A stretch of DNA of 64,000 bases from Macrostomum hystrix (GCA_950097015.1 CATNEN010000035.1:682001-746000); one strand, 5' to 3'; shown: positions 6,343-19,177, numbered from the stretch's first letter. Notes: generated from the sequence alone by a model not told the origin. Numbers and translations are program-made.

Positions 6343-7696
6343 TGATCTTAGGATTTAATTATTGATTTATCTAATTGATTTACTTGATTCACCGTCCTTC
6401 GCCTTCTGATTGTCCGTAGCAGCTCTCCCAGTCAGTTTGCGCGGGAGGGTCTGCTGCTGGCATCCGATTGCTGGACTTTGCTCAACTGACTTGCCCGCCC
6501 TCACCTCTTAAGCTATGACTTTTCAGTAATTAGTACTTGATCTAGCGACTAAATGTAACAAAAACAGTAGGATAGCTTCACTAACCTTATTTCCACAATA
6601 TTGCTAACCAGAAACTGTATTTGTTATTTCAAAACGTCAAAACATGTTTTTTAAAACTTAGAATTTCAGAAATTCGCAATATCTGTCTTTTTCCAACTTC
6701 TCACTTTATTCTTAGATCCAGTAAAAGGAAAAACTATTCTGCATCCTACTTTTTTCTCTTTTTTCTTCATGCTGACTATTTTTTGCTGTTGCCAGCTTTT
6801 GCTTAATAGTCTAAAAACATAGATTTCTTATTCTGCAGCTTTAATAAGTGATGCATTGTGACTCGATACTTATATTATACGAGCAATTTCTTGAAATGAG
6901 TTCTACAGATAGCATCTTTATATAGATGCTGAGTATATCGATCCTTGGAGTTAGATTTTTCTATTAGCAGTTATCTAGAGTCAAAATGGACGTGCTTGTG
7001 GGGCATTTTCAAGAATTTCTACATATTTATTCTCGAATCTAGAATGCATCGTTCAAAGTTTCTGTTTCTGTACTATTTGTAATATAGTAATGTACATAGA
7101 ATATAAAGCGTGTCAATGTGTCTTGTTCAAGGACACATATTGTCATAGAGACATAGAGATCACACAGATTCGAACTCTCGACCTCTTAGTTAGAAGTCCG
7201 AAGTTCTAACCACTGGTCTATAAGCTCCATAGTGTACAGGTGTAGGTAACACCGATCTTTGAATATCGTAGTGTGCTATGAAACTGTGGCCCTTAGGTTC
7301 GCAATCATTCAAAGTGCTGTATCTAATTTATTTTATAGATTTTTACAAGATTTTTACTAACTCTTTTACCCAGTTTTTTTCTGCAACCTTAAAGAACTGT
7401 CAGATGTGATGCACTTAACCTAATTACTCACATTTGTTTAGCATATTACTTCCAGTAGTCATGCGCACAACAACGCGATTGTTAGTCTTGAGATTTCGGG
7501 TTTTTGGCATGAAAAGTGGCTAACATTGACGACGCTGCTAGCCAATCCAGTAGTGACAACTCTCCGAACCAATTCGTTTAGCCTTTGCGCTCGTATATAG
7601 ATCTTTGCGTAAGTGCTAGCTTGAGCTTATAAAAACATCTTATTTTAAGAGGAAGTCGGAGTGTAGTTATCTTTAGCTGAAGTACGGAACAGTAAA

Positions 7697-9845
7697 ATGC
7701 AAGCTGAAGCTGAGGCTGGCGAATCGGTCACGCTAATGAGAGCGCTGGTGATCCCAAATGTTGATATCTGGCCAGAATTCAGTGTGCGCCCATTGTTGCG
7801 TGGCCTCATTGGCTGTGCTGCTCTGTTTGATCCGCACCACACTTGCTTTGAACTTGCCCGAGCCATCAGTTCGGCCGGGCCGCCTAAAAAGAGAGGTCGT
7901 CAAAGAAAAGGCCAAGCAGCCGGCTTCACTGTGCTGCCCTTCAAGTACATCTCCGAGAGGGAGACGCGAGACAAGTTCGCCGGCCCCAACTGGGAGCGGC
8001 TGGTTTATTCCGGCGAGGACCGTCGCCAGCCAGCTGTGACTGAGTGGTACCGCGTCAATCGTTGCCGCATCGACGACATACGCGAGGCCTGGCGCGCCGC
8101 CACCGAGATCCTGCTTACCTGGGAGGTAGAATGGCCAGAAGAATCGCAAGGCTTGTCCGAACTTGGCCGCGTACTGCACGAGCGACTGCCGGCTGAGGCA
8201 GCCGAAGTGGCCGCTTGCAGGCGCCTATTGGCTGAGCGGAAGCTGCCGTGCGGCTTCCGGTTGCAAGGCAGTCTGGCTGAGCTGTGGAGCTTTCAGGTAC
8301 CACATTGGTTCAATACAGCTTTAGATCCCTGTCGCTGAAGCTATATACTCAGTAGCTTTTAGCTCAAGGGTTAGAGCTTTTGAAGCAAGGGTTTGGTCTT
8401 CCTTCAGCTGTGGTCGTGGGGTCGTGTAGTTTGGTGGCGACCACCAGTCCATGGACTGAGCAACTGTACACAGTCTAAAGAATCGCCGCGCAATAGCAGC
8501 GGCTGGGCCACTGGATGTAGATGTTGCCTAAATTGGCTAGGCGTAGTTTTTTCAGTTAAGAAAGGGTTCCGCACGAATCCCGCAGACCGGCTCCGATCTC
8601 GACCTGGTGCGCTGCTGGCCTCGGGATCGTTCGCTCAGCGTTGTCAACCTATCGCCGGGACTGTGCCAGCTGCGCCGTCCGGCAGCCGTGGAGCGGTTGG
8701 GCATGCGACTCGGCATGCTCGGCCTGCTGGCTCGGCGATTCAGCACTGATAGCGCCCTGACGCAGATGCTGAGTCCGGGCCGCTTCCGGCGTCGCTTGGC
8801 CAAATGGCGCCTTGCTGACAGCCGGCGACGGGGCCTAGCCAGCCGTCTGCAAGAGCGTGGCCCGGCTGTAACTCAGGAGGCCGAGATCGACTTTGGTGAT
8901 GATGCATCGCGTGACAACAGTCCCGTCCGAGGAGCCGGAGATGCTACACATCGGCTGCCCTCGGTAGACTACGTGTGCAGCGTCAGGCTCAACAAATGGC
9001 CTCGCTTTCTTACCGCCGAGTGGCTGCCCAGACACTGCCGCCGGCACCAGTTTAGTCCGAGCGGCGCCCGAGTTCACGTCGTACCAATCGGCGGCACCTC
9101 CACCGTTCCTTGCACCCACGCCTGGCGCTACTCGTTCCACGAGCTTGAGGCTGCCATCGCTCGAAGTCTCACACCGCCAGAAGGCGCTTGCTACGCTTTG
9201 ATGAAGGCGGCCCATCGGGCCTACCTAAAGCCAGCCGGCTACAAGTCCTACCACGTCAAGACTGGCTTTCTGTGGCTGCGCCACCTGGAGGAGCCGGAAG
9301 TTTGGCAGCAGCAGCCGGGCCGTCTAATCCGGCTGGCCCTGCTGGGCCTGACCTTGGTCATGCAGTGCGGTGCCAATGGCTTCATGCCAAACTACTTCAT
9401 GCCGAATGAGAATGTCATGAGACAGCCGCTGCCTGCGAAGCCGCCTGCAACCACCGCCCAGCTGGCCAGCTTCCTGACGGACGCCGCTGGCCAACCCATC
9501 ATCGGCGTTGACCGGCACCGGTTGGCCGCCTGGCTCGACCAGCTAGCCGCTGAGCTGGCCGCCTCGGCCGCGGATCTAGCCGACGCCACGTCGGCGGGCA
9601 TTGCCGACTGTTACTGCCGAGTACACACCGTCACTGGCCGCAGTTTGCAAAGCGACTGCGCCGACTGCGACAAACTGATGGAGTGGAATCGCAGCGCTGA
9701 GCAATGGCAGCCAGCTGAGGACGCAGCTGTTAAGCAGAAACTGGCGAATGACGGCTTCCTCGGCCAACTGAGCAGGCTGCTAGGAATCAGTTCAGCCGCT
9801 GATGACGGCGATGGTCACGTTCTGGGACAAGCGGTATTCTTCTAA
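7697..9845 (+). CDS. cGAS-like receptor (cGLR)/Mab-21 family nucleotidyltransferase, ~619 aa; exons 7697-8296, 8586-9845
   Basis: Phase-0 splice (CAG|GTACC ... CCGCAG|ACC) builds GSLAELWSFQTGSDLD = hG[GS]x11DhD. Also present: GPAVT, VDYV (third acid), WP..L..EW, WRYSF..LE, CY..MK and SYHVKT..LWL, all typical Mab-21/cGLR motifs. Confidence 0.85.
8345..8545 (+). mobile_element. Degenerate SINE family B copy in the cGLR intron
   Basis: Shares CCAGTCCATGGACTGA and CGCCGCGCAATAGC with the copy at 56830-57105. Confidence 0.6.
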
Positions 9846-9884
9846 CTGATTTTGTCACTTTACTGGCTTGATAATCGATTGTAC

Positions 9885-9995
9885 AGTGGGGCTGTGGGCA
9901 CTGGCGCAGATTTGGTTACAGACAGTCGCATCCTAAGCACGCACGCACACAGATACCGTACGCAGGCACACACTCGCAGGTACGCAGACCAACAT
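9885..9995 (-). mobile_element. SINE family A 3' fragment
   Basis: Reverse complement GTGTGTGCCTGCGTACGGTATCTGTGTGCGTG...GTGCCCACAGCCC matches 44970-45085 and 58720-58845. Confidence 0.65.
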
Positions 9996-13397: not shown

Positions 13398-16300
13398 ATG
13401 AGCTCGGGCGGCGTCGTGTCCAGGAGTTCGCGCACCGAGACCTCCGGGTCGTCGTTCGCCAGTCGCGGAGTCTATCGCGGCCTCTCGCCTGCCAGCCAGA
13501 CTCGGCTGGAGGTGAGAAATCGATTTTCAATCTGGGATTCTCTCTGGGAACTGTGCGCTTAGTACATATGCACTCGTTCACTGATCTACTTCGTAATACT
13601 CGTTGATTTGCAGTCTCGCATTAAAGAACTTGAAGACCTCCTGGAATTGGAGCGCGATGGGCGAGTCAGGGTGAGTGATTTCTGCTGGAATACCACTGCA
13701 TTACAGCCAAGTAAAAAATAATTATACTGTAAAGTGTTTGTTATACCATACATTCTTTGCAGTGTTAGCACGTAAATGAATAGGTTTGAAATCATTTGAA
13801 ATTTTCACATATCAATAAGGAAGTCTCAAAATGTACACACAGTAGACTAAACCCCACTCACTCCCAGATGTACACACAGTAGACTAAACCCAACTCACTC
13901 CCAGATGTACATACAGCAGACTAAACCCCACTTAACCCAGATGTACATCAGCAGACTAAACACCACCTCACCCCCAGATGTCACACAGCAGATTAAACCC
14001 CACTCACCCCAGATGTACACACAGCAGATTAAACCCCACTCACCCCAGATGTACACACAGCAGATTAAACCCCACTCACCCCAGATGTACACACAGCAGA
14101 TTAAACCCCACTCACCCCAGATGTACACACAGCAGACTAAACCCCACTCACCCCAGATGTACACACAGCAGATTAAACCCCACTCACCCCAGATGTACAC
14201 ACAGCAGACTAAACCCAACTCACCCCAGATGTACACACAGCAGACTAAACCCAACTCACCCCAGATGTACACACAGCAGACTAAACCCCACTTAACCCAG
14301 ATGTACACACAAAAACTGTTTGTCTCCACCTCTGGTAACCCAGCATTTGTTTCCCCTCTTTACCCACCCCAGGCTGAGCGCAACATGCACGACTACGCCT
14401 ATCAGCTGGAGGCGGCAAACGAGCGGCTTGAGGAGGCCGGCGGAATCAGCTCGCAGGCCCAGGAGCTGATCAGGCGCCGTGAGCAGGAGACTCTGAAGCT
14501 GAAGAAGGAGCTGGAGGCGGCCAACAGCCAGCTTGAGAGCGTTGAGCAGTCGGTGAAGAAGAAGTACACGCTGATCATCGCTGAGCTCACTAGCGAGCTG
14601 GAGAACGCCAACAAGCAGAAGGCCCGGGTGGAGAAGGAGAAGACCACGATGCTGGTGGAGATTGACAATATGGCCAGCCAGCTAGATATGGCCATTAAAG
14701 CTAAGGTGTTTACCTCTCTATGCCGCATTGCATATATTTGTGTAAGCGATGCCTAATCAACCGATGCCTTCCCTGGCAGAACTCTTTCGAATCCAAGTAC
14801 GAAGCCTTGGAGGCCCAGCTGCTGCGGCTGCGGGCTCAGAACGACGATCTGACGGCGCAGCTGCGCGCTATGCAAGAGTCGCTGAGCCGCCTCCAGAATG
14901 AGAACGTTGATCTCCAGCGGGCTGCTCATGACTACGAATCGCAGGCTGCCACGCTGAGCAAGGCACGCTCGTCGCTGCAGAACCAGCTGGACGATCTGAA
15001 GAAGACTCTGGATGAGGAGACGAGGGTAGGTTTCCGTTAGAGAGTTCGTAGTTGGAAATTCTGCCAGGAAGGAAATGCAGGCATTACAGTGTCTCAGTAG
15101 CGGGTGAGTAGCGGAACTGTAAACTCAAGCGACTCCCGCACCAATGTTTCTGAGCTCGATTCCGCGGCGAGGCCTCATTCACTTGGGACGCAGCCGCGGA
15201 TTGAAGCTTGGTGGCTTGTCGTGCAATTTAGGGCGCAAGAGTGAGCATGGACTCATTGGGATGGACAGAATGGCGTCCTCCCTGATTTCAGTGCCTTCAA
15301 TATTCACCCGTCCATAAAAAACATTTTCAGTCGCGCACCAACCTGCAGTCGCAGCTGATTTCGCTGCAGCAGGACTACTTCAGCCTGCAGGCCAAGTACG
15401 AAGAGGAGAGCGAGGCGGCTGGAAACCTGCGCACCCAGCTGTCCAAGCTGAACGCGGACTTGGCTTCTGCTAGGACCAAGTACGAGCGCGACATTGTGGT
15501 GAAGATCGAAGAGTACGAGGAGATCCGCAAAAAGTTGACCATCCGCATCACGGAGCTGGAGGACATCTCGGAGCGGGAGCGAAGCCGCGCCAGCAATCTA
15601 GAGAAGACCAAGCAGAAGCTGACGCTAGAACTGAGGGACCTCCAGGGTGACCTGGACGCCCTGCAGGCCGCTAACCAGGAGCTGGCGTCTCGCGCTCGTC
15701 AGGCTGAGTCGTCAGTGAGCCAGCTGACCATTCGTGTGGAGGAGCTGACCTCAGAGAACAGCAGCCTCTCTTCGGTCAACCACGAGTTGCAATCGGAGGT
15801 GTCCCGCCTGCGCAAGGATCTGCAGACCTCGGAGGATAAGCGCAGCCAGCTGGAGAGGGAGAACGCCCAGCTAACTTCGCAGCTGAAGGATGCCAACAGC
15901 AGCAACCGGGACCTCAATAGACGCCTGACTGAATCCGAGGCCGCGCGCAACCAGCTGCAGGCGGAGCGCGACTCGCTGGCCTCCTCGCTGCAGGACGCCG
16001 AGGAGGCTCTGCGCGAGCTTGAGCTGAAGTACCAGCAGACCACTCAGGCTCTGGCCTCGCTGAAATCCGATCTGGAGGCCCGGCTGCGTGACCGGGAGGC
16101 GGAGCTGGAGAGCATTCGTAGGAGCAGCCAGCGGACCATCGAGGAGCTGCATGTGACTATCACGGAGATCGAGACCAAATACAAGAGCGAGGTAAGCCGG
16201 GCGCGCAAGAAGTACGAGTCTCTGGCCGCGGACCTGGAGGCTCAGATCGACAACCTGAACAGGGCGAACGCCAGCCTCGCCAAGGACATCAAGTTGTTTC

Positions 16301-19177
16301 AATCGCGCGTCCACGAACTGGAGGTGCTCCTGGAGGAGGAGCGTCGGGCGCACGAGGCTACTCAGACGGCCGCCAGCTCGGCTGAAAAGCGTCGCGCCGC
16401 CGCTCAGGGCGAGCTGGAGCAGGCGCGCACCCTGCTGGAAGCGGCCGAGAGAAAGGCCAAGACGGCCGAGTCTGAGCTGCACGAGGCCAGCAGCCGGCTG
16501 GACCACCTGACTGCGCAGCTGCAGAGCCTGACCGCCGACAAGCGTCGCCTGGAGGCCGAGCTCTCCGGCGCTCAGATGGAGGCCGAGGAGGCGCAGTCGG
16601 CGCGCATGGCCGAGGCCGACCGGGCCAACCGGCTGGCCGGCGAGGCGCAGCGGCTGGCGGACGAGCTGCGAATGGAGCAGGAGAACTACAAGAATGCTGA
16701 GTCGCTGCGCAAGCAGCTCGAGGTTGGTTTAGCTTTATCTAGCCATTGAGTTGAGTGAATACATCAAACTATTCAGTTCGTTGTATCTATCCAAAACATC
16801 AAGATTTTCTGCTCCCATTTTGGGCGCATCCTCGGAGAGAATGCCTTATGGACTTGTGGTGCAATTTACGCTCTTCGAGAGCCAACCTCTAAGAGCGTGC
16901 AGTGCCTGACGATGAGAAAGCCGGCAAATGTACACACCCATGTACACTCACAAGAGTCAGCGGAATATAATTTTTTATTAAACCATTTAGTACAAGTAGC
17001 AGTCACTTCAAGCATGCAAGGTCAGGGACGAACATGAAAGTCAAGCATTGCGCTGGTATTTTCCAGATTGAAATCCGCGAGATCACGGTGAAGCTGGAGG
17101 AGGCTGAGGCGTTCGCCACCCGCGAAGGCCGCCGCATGGTGCAGAAACTGCAGGGCCGGGTGCGCGACCTCGAGGCCGAGCTCGACCAGGAGCAGCGTCG
17201 GGCCAAGGATAGCGTGGCCGCGGCGCGCAAGTTCGAGCGCCAGGCCAAGGAGGCGCTGGCGCAGGCTGAGGAGGAGCGCCGGATGATCGTGGAGCTGCAG
17301 GATCTGCTGGACAAGACTCAGCTCAAGCTGAAAACCTACAAGCGCCAGATTGAGGAATCCGTGAGTCGATTTTTCGATAAATTTTTTAAGGACACGGCCG
17401 ACTATCGTTCGTAAGTATCTGTGAGCATTCTGGGAGTGAGTGGCAGAGCGGTTAACACGTTTGCCTCTCTCGCACCAAGGTCCCTGAGCTCGACTTCACG
17501 GCGAGGCCGCATTCATTTCGGGCGCAGCCGCGAAGAGAAGGCTTGGGGGCTTGTCGTGCAATTTACGCCCTTGAGGGCCAACCTCCAAGGCACAGTGAGA
17601 GTATACACTGCCTGACGATGAGAAAGTTAGGGTAGATGTAGCTCGGACACACCTGTGTGAGTGTGTGCTCAGGAGTCAGCGAAATGGGCAGAATTGCCTC
17701 CTCACTGGCTGCGAGTCTAGTGTCACCAAATGATTTGCCATTGCCCCAATTATTATCATTATCTGTGAGCAGTGTGTATTGTTTTTGTCAGCGGAACAGG
17801 CTGGAAATTATTCTATAGTGCCTGATCTGATTCTCATCTCAAAAGCAGTTCTTCAAACTATATGGTGCTATTTTCTTTTATCAACCTTTCGAATCAGAAT
17901 CGCAATGGTTGCCACTCCTGTCGAAATGTCTGTCCGAGACTGTTCTAACATCCCATATCTTCTGGGAATCTCCCAGTCCCTGCATCCAGCCCGAAACGCA
18001 GCTGAAATGTCAAGCCAAGCGAGACTTTCACTCCCACCTCCAAGTGCGTCCCGGCAGTTGCGAATGTCCCCCAACCCCCACAAGCCAGCCAGCTGTTTGG
18101 CAGACTGCTGGGAAAATCATTGATCCAATTCGAAAGAGGAAACGAAGCAGGGGCTCGGACGGGACGGGTTTGAATTGGCGGGTAGTGACTAAATTTATAA
18201 GGTCAAGCGGTTTTGAAGCCGCTGTGTGCGCACTCGGTGTTGGAAAATTTTAGGGTGGGCGAGTTTTTGAAAGGCCCGTTCGCCGCAGTGCTTCAATACG
18301 GACTAGGTAAACAATGTTCGCGAATATAAAGGATTTTTCGGAATCGACCTTCTTTCTATAGAAAATAATTAAGTTTGCATCTGCTTTTCTTTGCATCTGA
18401 AATGTGTTTCTATGGGACTAAAATTTAGGTCTTCAGTCTCTTGAGTCCTTTGATTATATTTATAATATGTAGATTTTTCTGTTATAAGGTCTTGTGTCTT
18501 TTGATCATCTATCGTCTGTCTATAGTTCTTCCGTGTTCTGTCTATATATATTCTGTTTATACTCGCTAGATCCTCTGTCCTTAGATCCTCTGTCCTTAGA
18601 TCCTGTCCTTAGATCCTGTCCTTAGATCCTGTCCTTAGATCTTCTTTCTATAATCCCAAAATGTCTGTAGATATTCTGCCTATAAACTCCAAATGTCTAT
18701 AGATCTTCAGTCTAAAGATATTCTGGTTAAAATAGCTAGATCCTCTGTCCTTACACAAGGACAACTTAAGTATATATACGTTACTTGATTAGTCCTTGTC
18801 CTTAGATCCTATCCTTAGATCTTCTGTCCTTAGATCTTCTTTCTGTGTCTATAGATCTTCTGCCTATAAACCAAATATGTCTCTAGATTTATGTCTACAA
18901 ATCTTTCATCTATACATGAAGACATTGCGTCTGAAGATTTCTATTGCTAATCAAAGTGGAGCCGCCGCCTGCTCGAACACCGCAGGAGGAGGTGTCCGCC
19001 ATCTGCATGAACAAATACCGGAAGGCGCAGCAGCAGATTGAAGAGGCCGAGCATCGCGCTGACATCGCCGAGCGTACAATGTCTGTTAGGCGCGGCAGCA
19101 CCGTCATCAGGTCGGTGAGCATCTCGCGCGAAGTGAGCAGCAGCCGTAAGTCCGGCCGGGCCGTCAGCATCATGTGA
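13398..19177 (+). CDS. PRM: Paramyosin, ~875 aa; exons 13398-13511, 13614-13670, 14373-14705, 14780-15025, 15331-16722, 17067-17360, 18986-19177
   Basis: Headless myosin-rod coiled coil colinear with Schistosoma Sm97 as recalled ([28 protein letters not shown]; [29 protein letters not shown]; [19 protein letters not shown]). All introns are GT-AG and phase 0. Confidence 0.95.
13830..14312. repeat. Minisatellite, 36-nt unit (CACCCCAGATGTACACACAGCAGATTAAACCCCACT, ~13 copies) in a paramyosin intron
   Basis: Direct inspection. Confidence 0.95.
15100..15240 (+). mobile_element. SINE family A 5' fragment in a paramyosin intron
   Basis: GAGCTCGATTCCGCGGCGAGGCC...GCTTGTCGTGCAATTTA matches 17486-17560. 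Confidence 0.65.
16820..16970 (+). mobile_element. SINE family A internal fragment in a paramyosin intron
   Basis: GCCAACCTC...GCCTGACGATGAGAAAG...TGTACACAC...GGAGTCAGCG-like blocks are shared with the other copies. Confidence 0.7.
17432..17765 (+). mobile_element. tRNA-derived SINE family A, near full length
   Basis: A-box-like TGGCAGAGCGG (17441-17451), B-box-like GAGCTCGACTT (17486-17496), conserved body and (TTA/TCA)n tail. At least six related copies occur in the window. Confidence 0.75.
18560..18900. repeat. Degenerate 13-15-nt minisatellite (TAGATCCT[CT]GTCCT) in the last paramyosin intron
   Basis: Direct inspection. Confidence 0.8.

Follow-up and report, generated by a model that had tools for sequence, protein, structure and literature searches.

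A predicted divergent gene of the cGAS-like receptor family with an intact catalytic signature in Macrostomum hystrix

The window analysed here, a stretch of 64,000 nucleotides of Macrostomum hystrix (contig 35, positions 682001–746000, of a 220-Mb assembly), carries what appears from its sequence to be a real, divergent gene of the cGAS-like receptor (cGLR) family, with an intact catalytic signature and a splice junction placed by homology. The reading that we favour, and that we regard as probably correct, is an intact two-exon Macrostomum gene whose product of about 619 amino acids is built around a nucleotidyltransferase domain of the cGLR/Mab21 fold and is predicted to work as a signal synthase triggered by nucleic acid. 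The protein consists of a lineage-specific N-terminal part of about 120 amino acids with the motif KKRGRQRK, a cGAS-like catalytic domain (residues ~121–525) and an acidic tail of about 95 amino acids with a CxC..CxxC motif.

Gene structure and locus

Two exons joined at 8296/8586 had been proposed in the initial annotation of this locus, and both were found again in the sequence, with GT and AG at the ends of the stretch between them. The gene comprises the following elements, whose positions, like those given below, are counted from the first letter of the window.

7628–7634, + strand: heptamer resembling a TATA box, some 65 nt before the ATG, weak and judged from sequence only
7697–8296, + strand: exon 1, 200 codons from the ATG (amino acids 1–200), ending in CAG followed by gt
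8297–8585, + strand: intervening sequence of 289 nt, GT..AG, with in-frame stops; presumed intron, phase 0
8586–9845, + strand: exon 2, 419 codons (amino acids 201–619) and a TAA stop at 9843–9845

Both exon frames are open beyond chance: among 5000 shuffles with local base composition, the frame of exon 1 stayed open in seven and that of exon 2 in none. The exons have a GC content of 0.60–0.64, as against 0.49 for the 289 nt between them and about 0.35 for the flanking DNA, and the GC content steps up exactly at the gene, from 0.36 to 0.50–0.63. Horizontal transfer or contamination, considered as the source of a GC-rich gene in AT-rich flanks, was rejected, since the neighbouring genes are as GC-rich as the cGAS-like gene and its nearest relatives are Macrostomum proteins; the contrast thus characterizes this genome and is no mark of foreign DNA.

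One public sequencing run was found, which we guess to be of RNA. Its contigs lie on the gene at 9234–9482 and 9668–9899 only, and they give no clear sign of expression. At position 9420 the window has A and the public run has C (a single contig, depth 4.3), which may be an allele or an error. The downstream neighbour, at 13905–17414 on the + strand, is unrelated: a gene that runs through several frames and resembles a coiled-coil myosin tail (Myosin_tail_1, E = 5e-25).

Family membership and predicted structure

The product had been taken in the initial annotation for a catalytically intact cGAS-like (Mab21-fold) nucleotidyltransferase without a cGAS-type Zn ribbon, to be checked by HMM and by structure prediction against cGAS and cGLRs, and profile comparison, AlphaFold with Foldseek, and structural superposition all agree with this assignment. 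Searches and folding were carried out exon by exon, and the structural model is that of exon 2 alone, without the GS loop. In Pfam, the exon 2 protein scores 23.7 bits with Mab-21_C (PF20266; E = 5.6e-5), against a cut-off of 24.1, and in a six-frame scan of the genome the same profile reaches 26.9 bits at the locus, over the cut-off. The Pfam Mab-21 profile matches exon 2 weakly (13.3 bits, E = 0.09), and a Pfam scan of exon 1 gave no match. Direct sequence search of the PDB with exon 2 gave MB21D2 as the best match (E = 0.003) and Cv-cGLR1 (8gjw) at E = 1.7.

A word-indexed homology search with exon 2 gave no match, which is a limit of its prefilter, as relatives do exist: an exhaustive HMMER search recovered 341 at E values up to 0.001. 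Two alignments were used, one that combines exon 2 and 104 homologous pieces (A1; 105 sequences) and one of the pieces that precede DxD (A2; 58 sequences). When compared with the PDB, the A1 profile matched cGLR1 (8gjy; E = 4e-49), MB21D2 (7e-42), Cv-cGLR1 (8gjw; 9e-33), cGAS (~1e-29) and MAB21L1 (3e-25), as well as MiD51. It was aligned to cGLR1 and MB21D2 over positions 12–291 of 293, so that the nucleotidyltransferase core and the C-terminal helix bundle are both covered.

AlphaFold (AF2) prediction of exon 2 with A1 yielded a model with a pLDDT of 71.9 and a pTM of 0.66, in which residues 1–290 are mostly above 85; the prediction from the single sequence (pLDDT 38) was unusable. The top Foldseek matches of the exon 2 model are cGAS structures (E = 5e-10, probability 1). 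In the VIA superposition on cGAS (Z 19.8, rmsd 3.1 Å, 264 residues), model residues 1–324 lie on residues 208–507 of the mouse enzyme and 222–522 of the human enzyme. The catalytic part of exon 2 (amino acids 1–290) is basic, with a pI of 10.4.

The Macrostomum lignano orthologue

The closest relatives are two M. lignano proteins, BOX15_Mlig007181g1 (P0154, 569 amino acids) and UniProt A0A1I8F3Z9 (P0001), both of them uncharacterized and already present in databases as 'Mab-21 domain-containing protein' or hypothetical. Exon 2 is 35% identical to P0154 over 415 amino acids (E = 2e-67), and amino acids 61–200 of exon 1 align to P0154 residues 35–166 (E = 2e-11), the alignment ending exactly at FQ. 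The M. hystrix protein and P0154 share the LQGS/FQGS-X11-DxD segment, the GPAV and VD[YF]V strands, an Arg/Lys-rich helix, a basic N-terminal motif and a C-terminal CxC..CxxC. They differ in the length of the N-terminal extension, which is shorter in P0154 (GS at 157, versus 191 here), and in the single intron of P0154, which lies elsewhere, after K297.

The gene for the orthologue was found at L012:2982–4809 (NIVC01002973.1), with intron positions wholly different from those of the M. hystrix copy. P0001 is 88% identical to P0154 and lacks the N-terminus and two internal segments, which include the GPAV and third-acid strands; these gaps are probably an artefact of the gene model or reflect a damaged allele or homeologue.

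The splice junction and a repeat within the intron

The signature of the active site is completed only by splicing, and the junction 8296/8586 is supported by collinearity with two relatives that are uninterrupted at this place. P0154 aligns without a gap, its residues as far as FQ166 to exon 1 and those starting at S169 to exon 2, and it has GS-X11-DxD in one exon, and the nearest paralogue in the M. hystrix genome, L002, has LQGGCGEMWTFRDGGDLDISF in one frame. Because removal of the presumed intron restores collinearity with both, we infer that it is spliced at 8296/8586. The only intron of P0154 is 118 nt long, and P0154 has none at the GS/DxD place.

Three other acceptors are in frame with the donor at 8296, with exon starts at 8547, 8556 and 8565, and would add 13, 10 and 7 residues, respectively, to the GS–DxD loop. 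The best pyrimidine tract, better than that of 8586, belongs to the acceptor at 8556. The spacing from GS to [DE]h[DE]h is X11 with 8296/8586, as in P0154 and L002, and would widen to X18, X21 or X24 if one of the alternative acceptors were used. Part of the intervening sequence is repetitive.

8434–8545, + strand: piece of a dispersed SINE-like repeat within the intron, with at least 40 scored copies (190 candidates) at 76–89% identity

The piece, about 110 nt long, belongs to a repeat of about 75–110 nt whose copies are spread across the genome, and the copy in the intron is 11–24% diverged from its relatives. Since some other copies follow a tRNA-like T-arm, the repeat has the look of a SINE of tRNA origin. 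The intron itself gave no match in Rfam and tRNA scans. The alternative acceptor ttttttcag (8547–8555) lies at the A/T-rich end of the piece. About 100 of the 289 nt are non-repeat and both exons are intact despite the well-diverged repeat copy, and we therefore read the sequence as an older intron that would later have received a SINE-like insertion.

The active site

The features that define the catalytic domain are as follows. Exon 2 numbering is used for alignment columns, with D4, D6 and D128 corresponding to D204, D206 and D328 of the full-length protein.

8267–8272, + strand: G191-S192 of L-Q-G191-S192; G191 invariant, S192 and E195 at least 90% conserved (A2, 58 sequences)
8595–8603, + strand: D204-L-D206, predicted first two catalytic acids; D in 99 and 101 of 105 sequences
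8859–8870, + strand: GPAV strand motif (amino acids 292–295); G92 and P93 at least 90% conserved
8967–8969, + strand: D328 in VDYV, predicted third catalytic acid; D in 102 of 105 sequences, aligned to the D of DVDLVPA in Cv-cGLR1 (8gjw)
9189–9422, + strand: Mab-21_C helical-bundle core (exon 2 amino acids 202–279) with SYHVKT and PNYFMPNEN; K207, Y222, K225 and N276 kept

G191-S192, D204-L-D206 and D328 thus lie where they had been placed before, in columns that are invariant or at least 90% conserved. All 17 columns of A1 with at least 90% conservation are kept in the M. hystrix protein (D4, D6, G92, P93, D128, P139, R149, P158, W180, R181, S183, E188, K207, Y222, K225, E233 and N276; residue counts are given for 13 of the 17 positions). 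A structural alignment of the acids with the cGAS triad had also been proposed as a check. In the superposition, model residue 1 corresponds to residue 222 of human and 208 of mouse cGAS, which places D204 and D206 on the first two cGAS acids, which we take to be E225/D227 in human and E211/D213 in mouse; D328 was matched by the alignment to 8gjw.

Li et al. (2023; PMC9980059) define cGLRs by the pattern h[QT]GS X8-20 [DE]h[DE]h X50-90 h[DE]h. The M. hystrix gene has h[QT]GS, D204-L-D206-L and V-D328-Y, and its spacing from the second to the third acid is X119, outside X50-90; that of the M. lignano orthologue is X114. As this spacing exceeds 90 in 91 of 101 aligned relatives (median 106), the X50-90 bound is soft for this clade.

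The Zn-ribbon insertion of cGAS, H(X5)CC(X6)C after the WRLSFS helix, is absent from the sequence and from the exon 2 model, in accordance with the initial annotation. Only about six residues separate the WRYSF..ELEAAIARSL helix from CYALMK, the sequence there being ARSLTPPEGACYAL, and model helices 185–193 and 197–217 stand back to back at this place. A Zn ribbon of the cGAS type was rejected on these grounds.

Regions outside the catalytic core

Further features lie upstream of the active site, in the catalytic domain and in the tail.

7697–8056, + strand: lineage-specific N-terminal extension (amino acids 1–120), acidic/hydrophobic in 1–60 (pI 5.1), then basic in 61–124 (pI 10.7)
7880–7909, + strand: PPKKRGRQRK (amino acids 62–71), a putative NLS or AT-hook
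8057–8296, + strand: N-terminal helix and first strand of the nucleotidyltransferase core (amino acids ~121–200), with LQG191S192LAE195, from alignment A2, L002 and P0154
8781–8834, + strand: Arg-rich helix RFRRRLAKWRLADSRRRG (amino acids 266–283), model helix 64–81, pLDDT ~90
9558–9842, + strand: C-terminal tail (exon 2 amino acids 325–419, ~95 residues) beyond the cGAS-like domain, acidic, of low model confidence
9609–9668, + strand: CxC-X13-CxxC (C542, C544, C558, C561); CLC...CxNC in the orthologue

An unassigned N-terminal domain of about 185 amino acids had been described for this protein, and about 120 of these are indeed unassigned and lineage-specific. The remainder belongs to the enzyme: amino acids ~121–200 align to the helix and first strand that precede GS in the paralogue L002 (E = 2e-4) and in P0154, and the extension is therefore ~120 and not 185 amino acids long. 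Most relatives start 55–75 amino acids before the GS motif, where the M. hystrix protein has 190 residues. The extension yielded no Pfam match, no Atlas lead and no paralogue in its own genome, and there is no evidence that it forms a fold. In the Atlas feature search, the best score for exon 1 was 0.88, with recognition under threshold and unrelated bacterial clusters as the matches. One weak match of exon 1 in its own genome (L009, E = 0.0016, with a stop) was taken as chance, as there is no gene on that strand. The PPKKRGRQRK motif reported earlier is present, and in the M. lignano orthologue APSGRRRRGKQ stands at the aligned place.

The very basic patch noted in the initial annotation is likewise present and corresponds to RFRRRLAKWRLADSRRRG. 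It is the ordinary 'kfr' helix of the family, which precedes the GPA strand with the profile consensus 'ssekfrekikkalkk', and it is only richer in Arg; the orthologue has KFRKKFSDWRLANS at this position. The VIA alignment stops at model residue ~324, which corresponds to the C-terminus of cGAS, and the pLDDT is below 50 for residues 330–389. A search of the genome with the tail found only the tail itself. Judged from the two Macrostomum sequences, CxC-X13-CxxC is a possible small metal site.

Paralogues and a STING-like frame

A search of the genome for paralogues and for STING had been suggested with the initial annotation. The six-frame Pfam scan returned at least 103 Mab-21_C matches. The in-genome paralogues of the gene are all distant (at most 32% identity, E = 3e-6 or weaker), whereas the M. 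lignano counterpart matches at E = 2e-67, which argues for an old, separate lineage within Macrostomum. Many of the Mab-21_C matches are arranged in tandem clusters, one of which holds nine matches in 100 kb of contig 1 (~12.72–12.82 Mb); this arrangement points to recent local expansion of cGLR-like genes. The closest in-genome paralogues, L002 (C39:3937686–3941189) and L005 (C39:3946577–3950053), are about 9 kb apart. L002 has GG instead of GS, its C-terminal frame contains long hydrophobic stretches of membrane-like character, and it may be a membrane-anchored Mab21 protein.

The Pfam search for STING produced a single match, below threshold: a STING_LBD-like ORF (L010, C2:9104529–9104996, minus strand) in a frame of 337 codons, which covers 143 of 182 Pfam positions and scores 25 bits (E = 1.4e-5) against a cut-off of 27. 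It was seen by the Pfam profile alone, a phmmer search of the PDB with this ORF giving no match, and it is a candidate for a diverged STING.

Comparison with known family members

The predicted M. hystrix protein resembles animal cGLRs (Cv-cGLR1 8gjw, cGLR1 8gjy and Drosophila cGLR1; PMC9980059) in fold and in the absence of a Zn ribbon. Common to both are h[QT]GS in the activation loop, the acids of [DE]h[DE]h and of h[DE]h, a basic catalytic domain, and WRxSFS, SYHxKT and PxYF[IM]P in the helical-bundle lobe. The M. hystrix protein differs from these cGLRs in its X119 spacing (versus X50-90), in the extra N-terminal extension of ~120 amino acids and the tail of ~95, and in its distance in direct comparison (E = 1.7 to 8gjw). 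The resemblance to vertebrate cGAS lies in the structure (Z 19.8 over 264 residues), in D204/D206 at the place of E225/D227 and in the presence of a basic extension ahead of the catalytic domain; the M. hystrix protein lacks the H(X5)CC(X6)C Zn ribbon, is only 16–19% identical and has an extension that cannot be aligned. Human MB21D2 (7lt1) is the best direct PDB match (E = 0.003) and superposes with Z 19.0 over 286 residues, yet the A1 profile ranks cGLR1 above it. To our knowledge, no enzymatic product of MB21D2 has been reported.

Proposed function and alternatives

Since the protein belongs to this family, we infer a mechanism from its known members. At rest, the G-S activation loop would hold the active site in an inactive state. 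A ligand, probably nucleic acid, would bind the basic face together with the Arg-rich helix and so reorder the loop. The three acids, once they have bound two metal ions, would link two NTPs to give a cyclic or linear oligonucleotide signal, which a STING-like receptor of the same genome might read. A role of the gene as an immune sensor is plausible. Points against the favoured reading are the weak matches to single sequences (Pfam 23.7 versus 24.1; MB21D2 E = 0.003), the acid spacing of X119, which departs from the published range, and the single STING match, below threshold.

An intact motif does not by itself show activity, and the protein could instead be a Mab21-fold protein that neither catalyses nor signals but has the role of a scaffold, an adaptor or a regulator that binds nucleotides, such as has been proposed for MAB21L1 or MiD49/51, so that no second messenger would be made. 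We consider this possible, if doubtful. In its favour, direct sequence comparison has MB21D2 as the best solved relative; the profile extends to MAB21L1 and MiD51; with at least 103 paralogues functional drift is likely in many; and the table of the 2023 screen holds only five M. lignano proteins, of which Mlig007181g1 is not one and none of which the main text names as active (Li et al., 2023; PMC9980059). Developmental Mab21 proteins and MiDs have degenerate triads, however, and here, as in an orthologue of only 35% identity, none of the catalytic and nucleotide-contacting signature positions has been lost, the pattern that constraint on catalysis would give.

The gene might also have been broken or altered by insertion, such that the 289-nt sequence is retained or spliced at another acceptor and the 619-amino-acid protein is not made as modelled. 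The orthologue is intronless at this place, a piece of repeat lies within the intron, in-frame acceptors exist at 8547, 8556 and 8565, the second of them with a better pyrimidine tract than 8586, and the contigs of the public run miss exon 1 and the junction. We nevertheless hold such damage to be improbable. A dead gene as old as the 11–24% divergence of the repeat copy implies should show stops or frameshifts, but both frames are intact; GT and AG stand exactly at the points that restore collinearity; the ~100 nt of non-repeat sequence fit an older intron with an insertion; and all alternative acceptors are in frame and keep the catalytic residues.

A more far-reaching possibility, to which we give only slightly more credence than to a broken gene, is that the gene and its M. 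lignano orthologue form a separate, old Macrostomum cGLR lineage in which the basic N-terminal motif, as a nuclear or nucleic-acid tether, and the C-terminal Cys4 module would give a ligand specificity or regulation unseen in known cGLRs, the product feeding the STING-domain receptors of the genome. The gene is one more member of the known cGLR family with an orthologue already annotated, and knowledge of the family is unchanged.

Implications

The gene calls for caution in surveys of the family, as a search bound to the published spacing of X50-90 would pass over this clade. According to Li et al. (2023; PMC9980059), most platyhelminths are without cGLRs, and Macrostomum, with its very large expansion, is an exception to a phylum that mostly lacks cGLR signalling. 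In a model animal that is tractable and regenerates, an intact-looking, deeply diverged copy with a conserved orthologue is thus reasonable to include among the candidates for biochemical screens.
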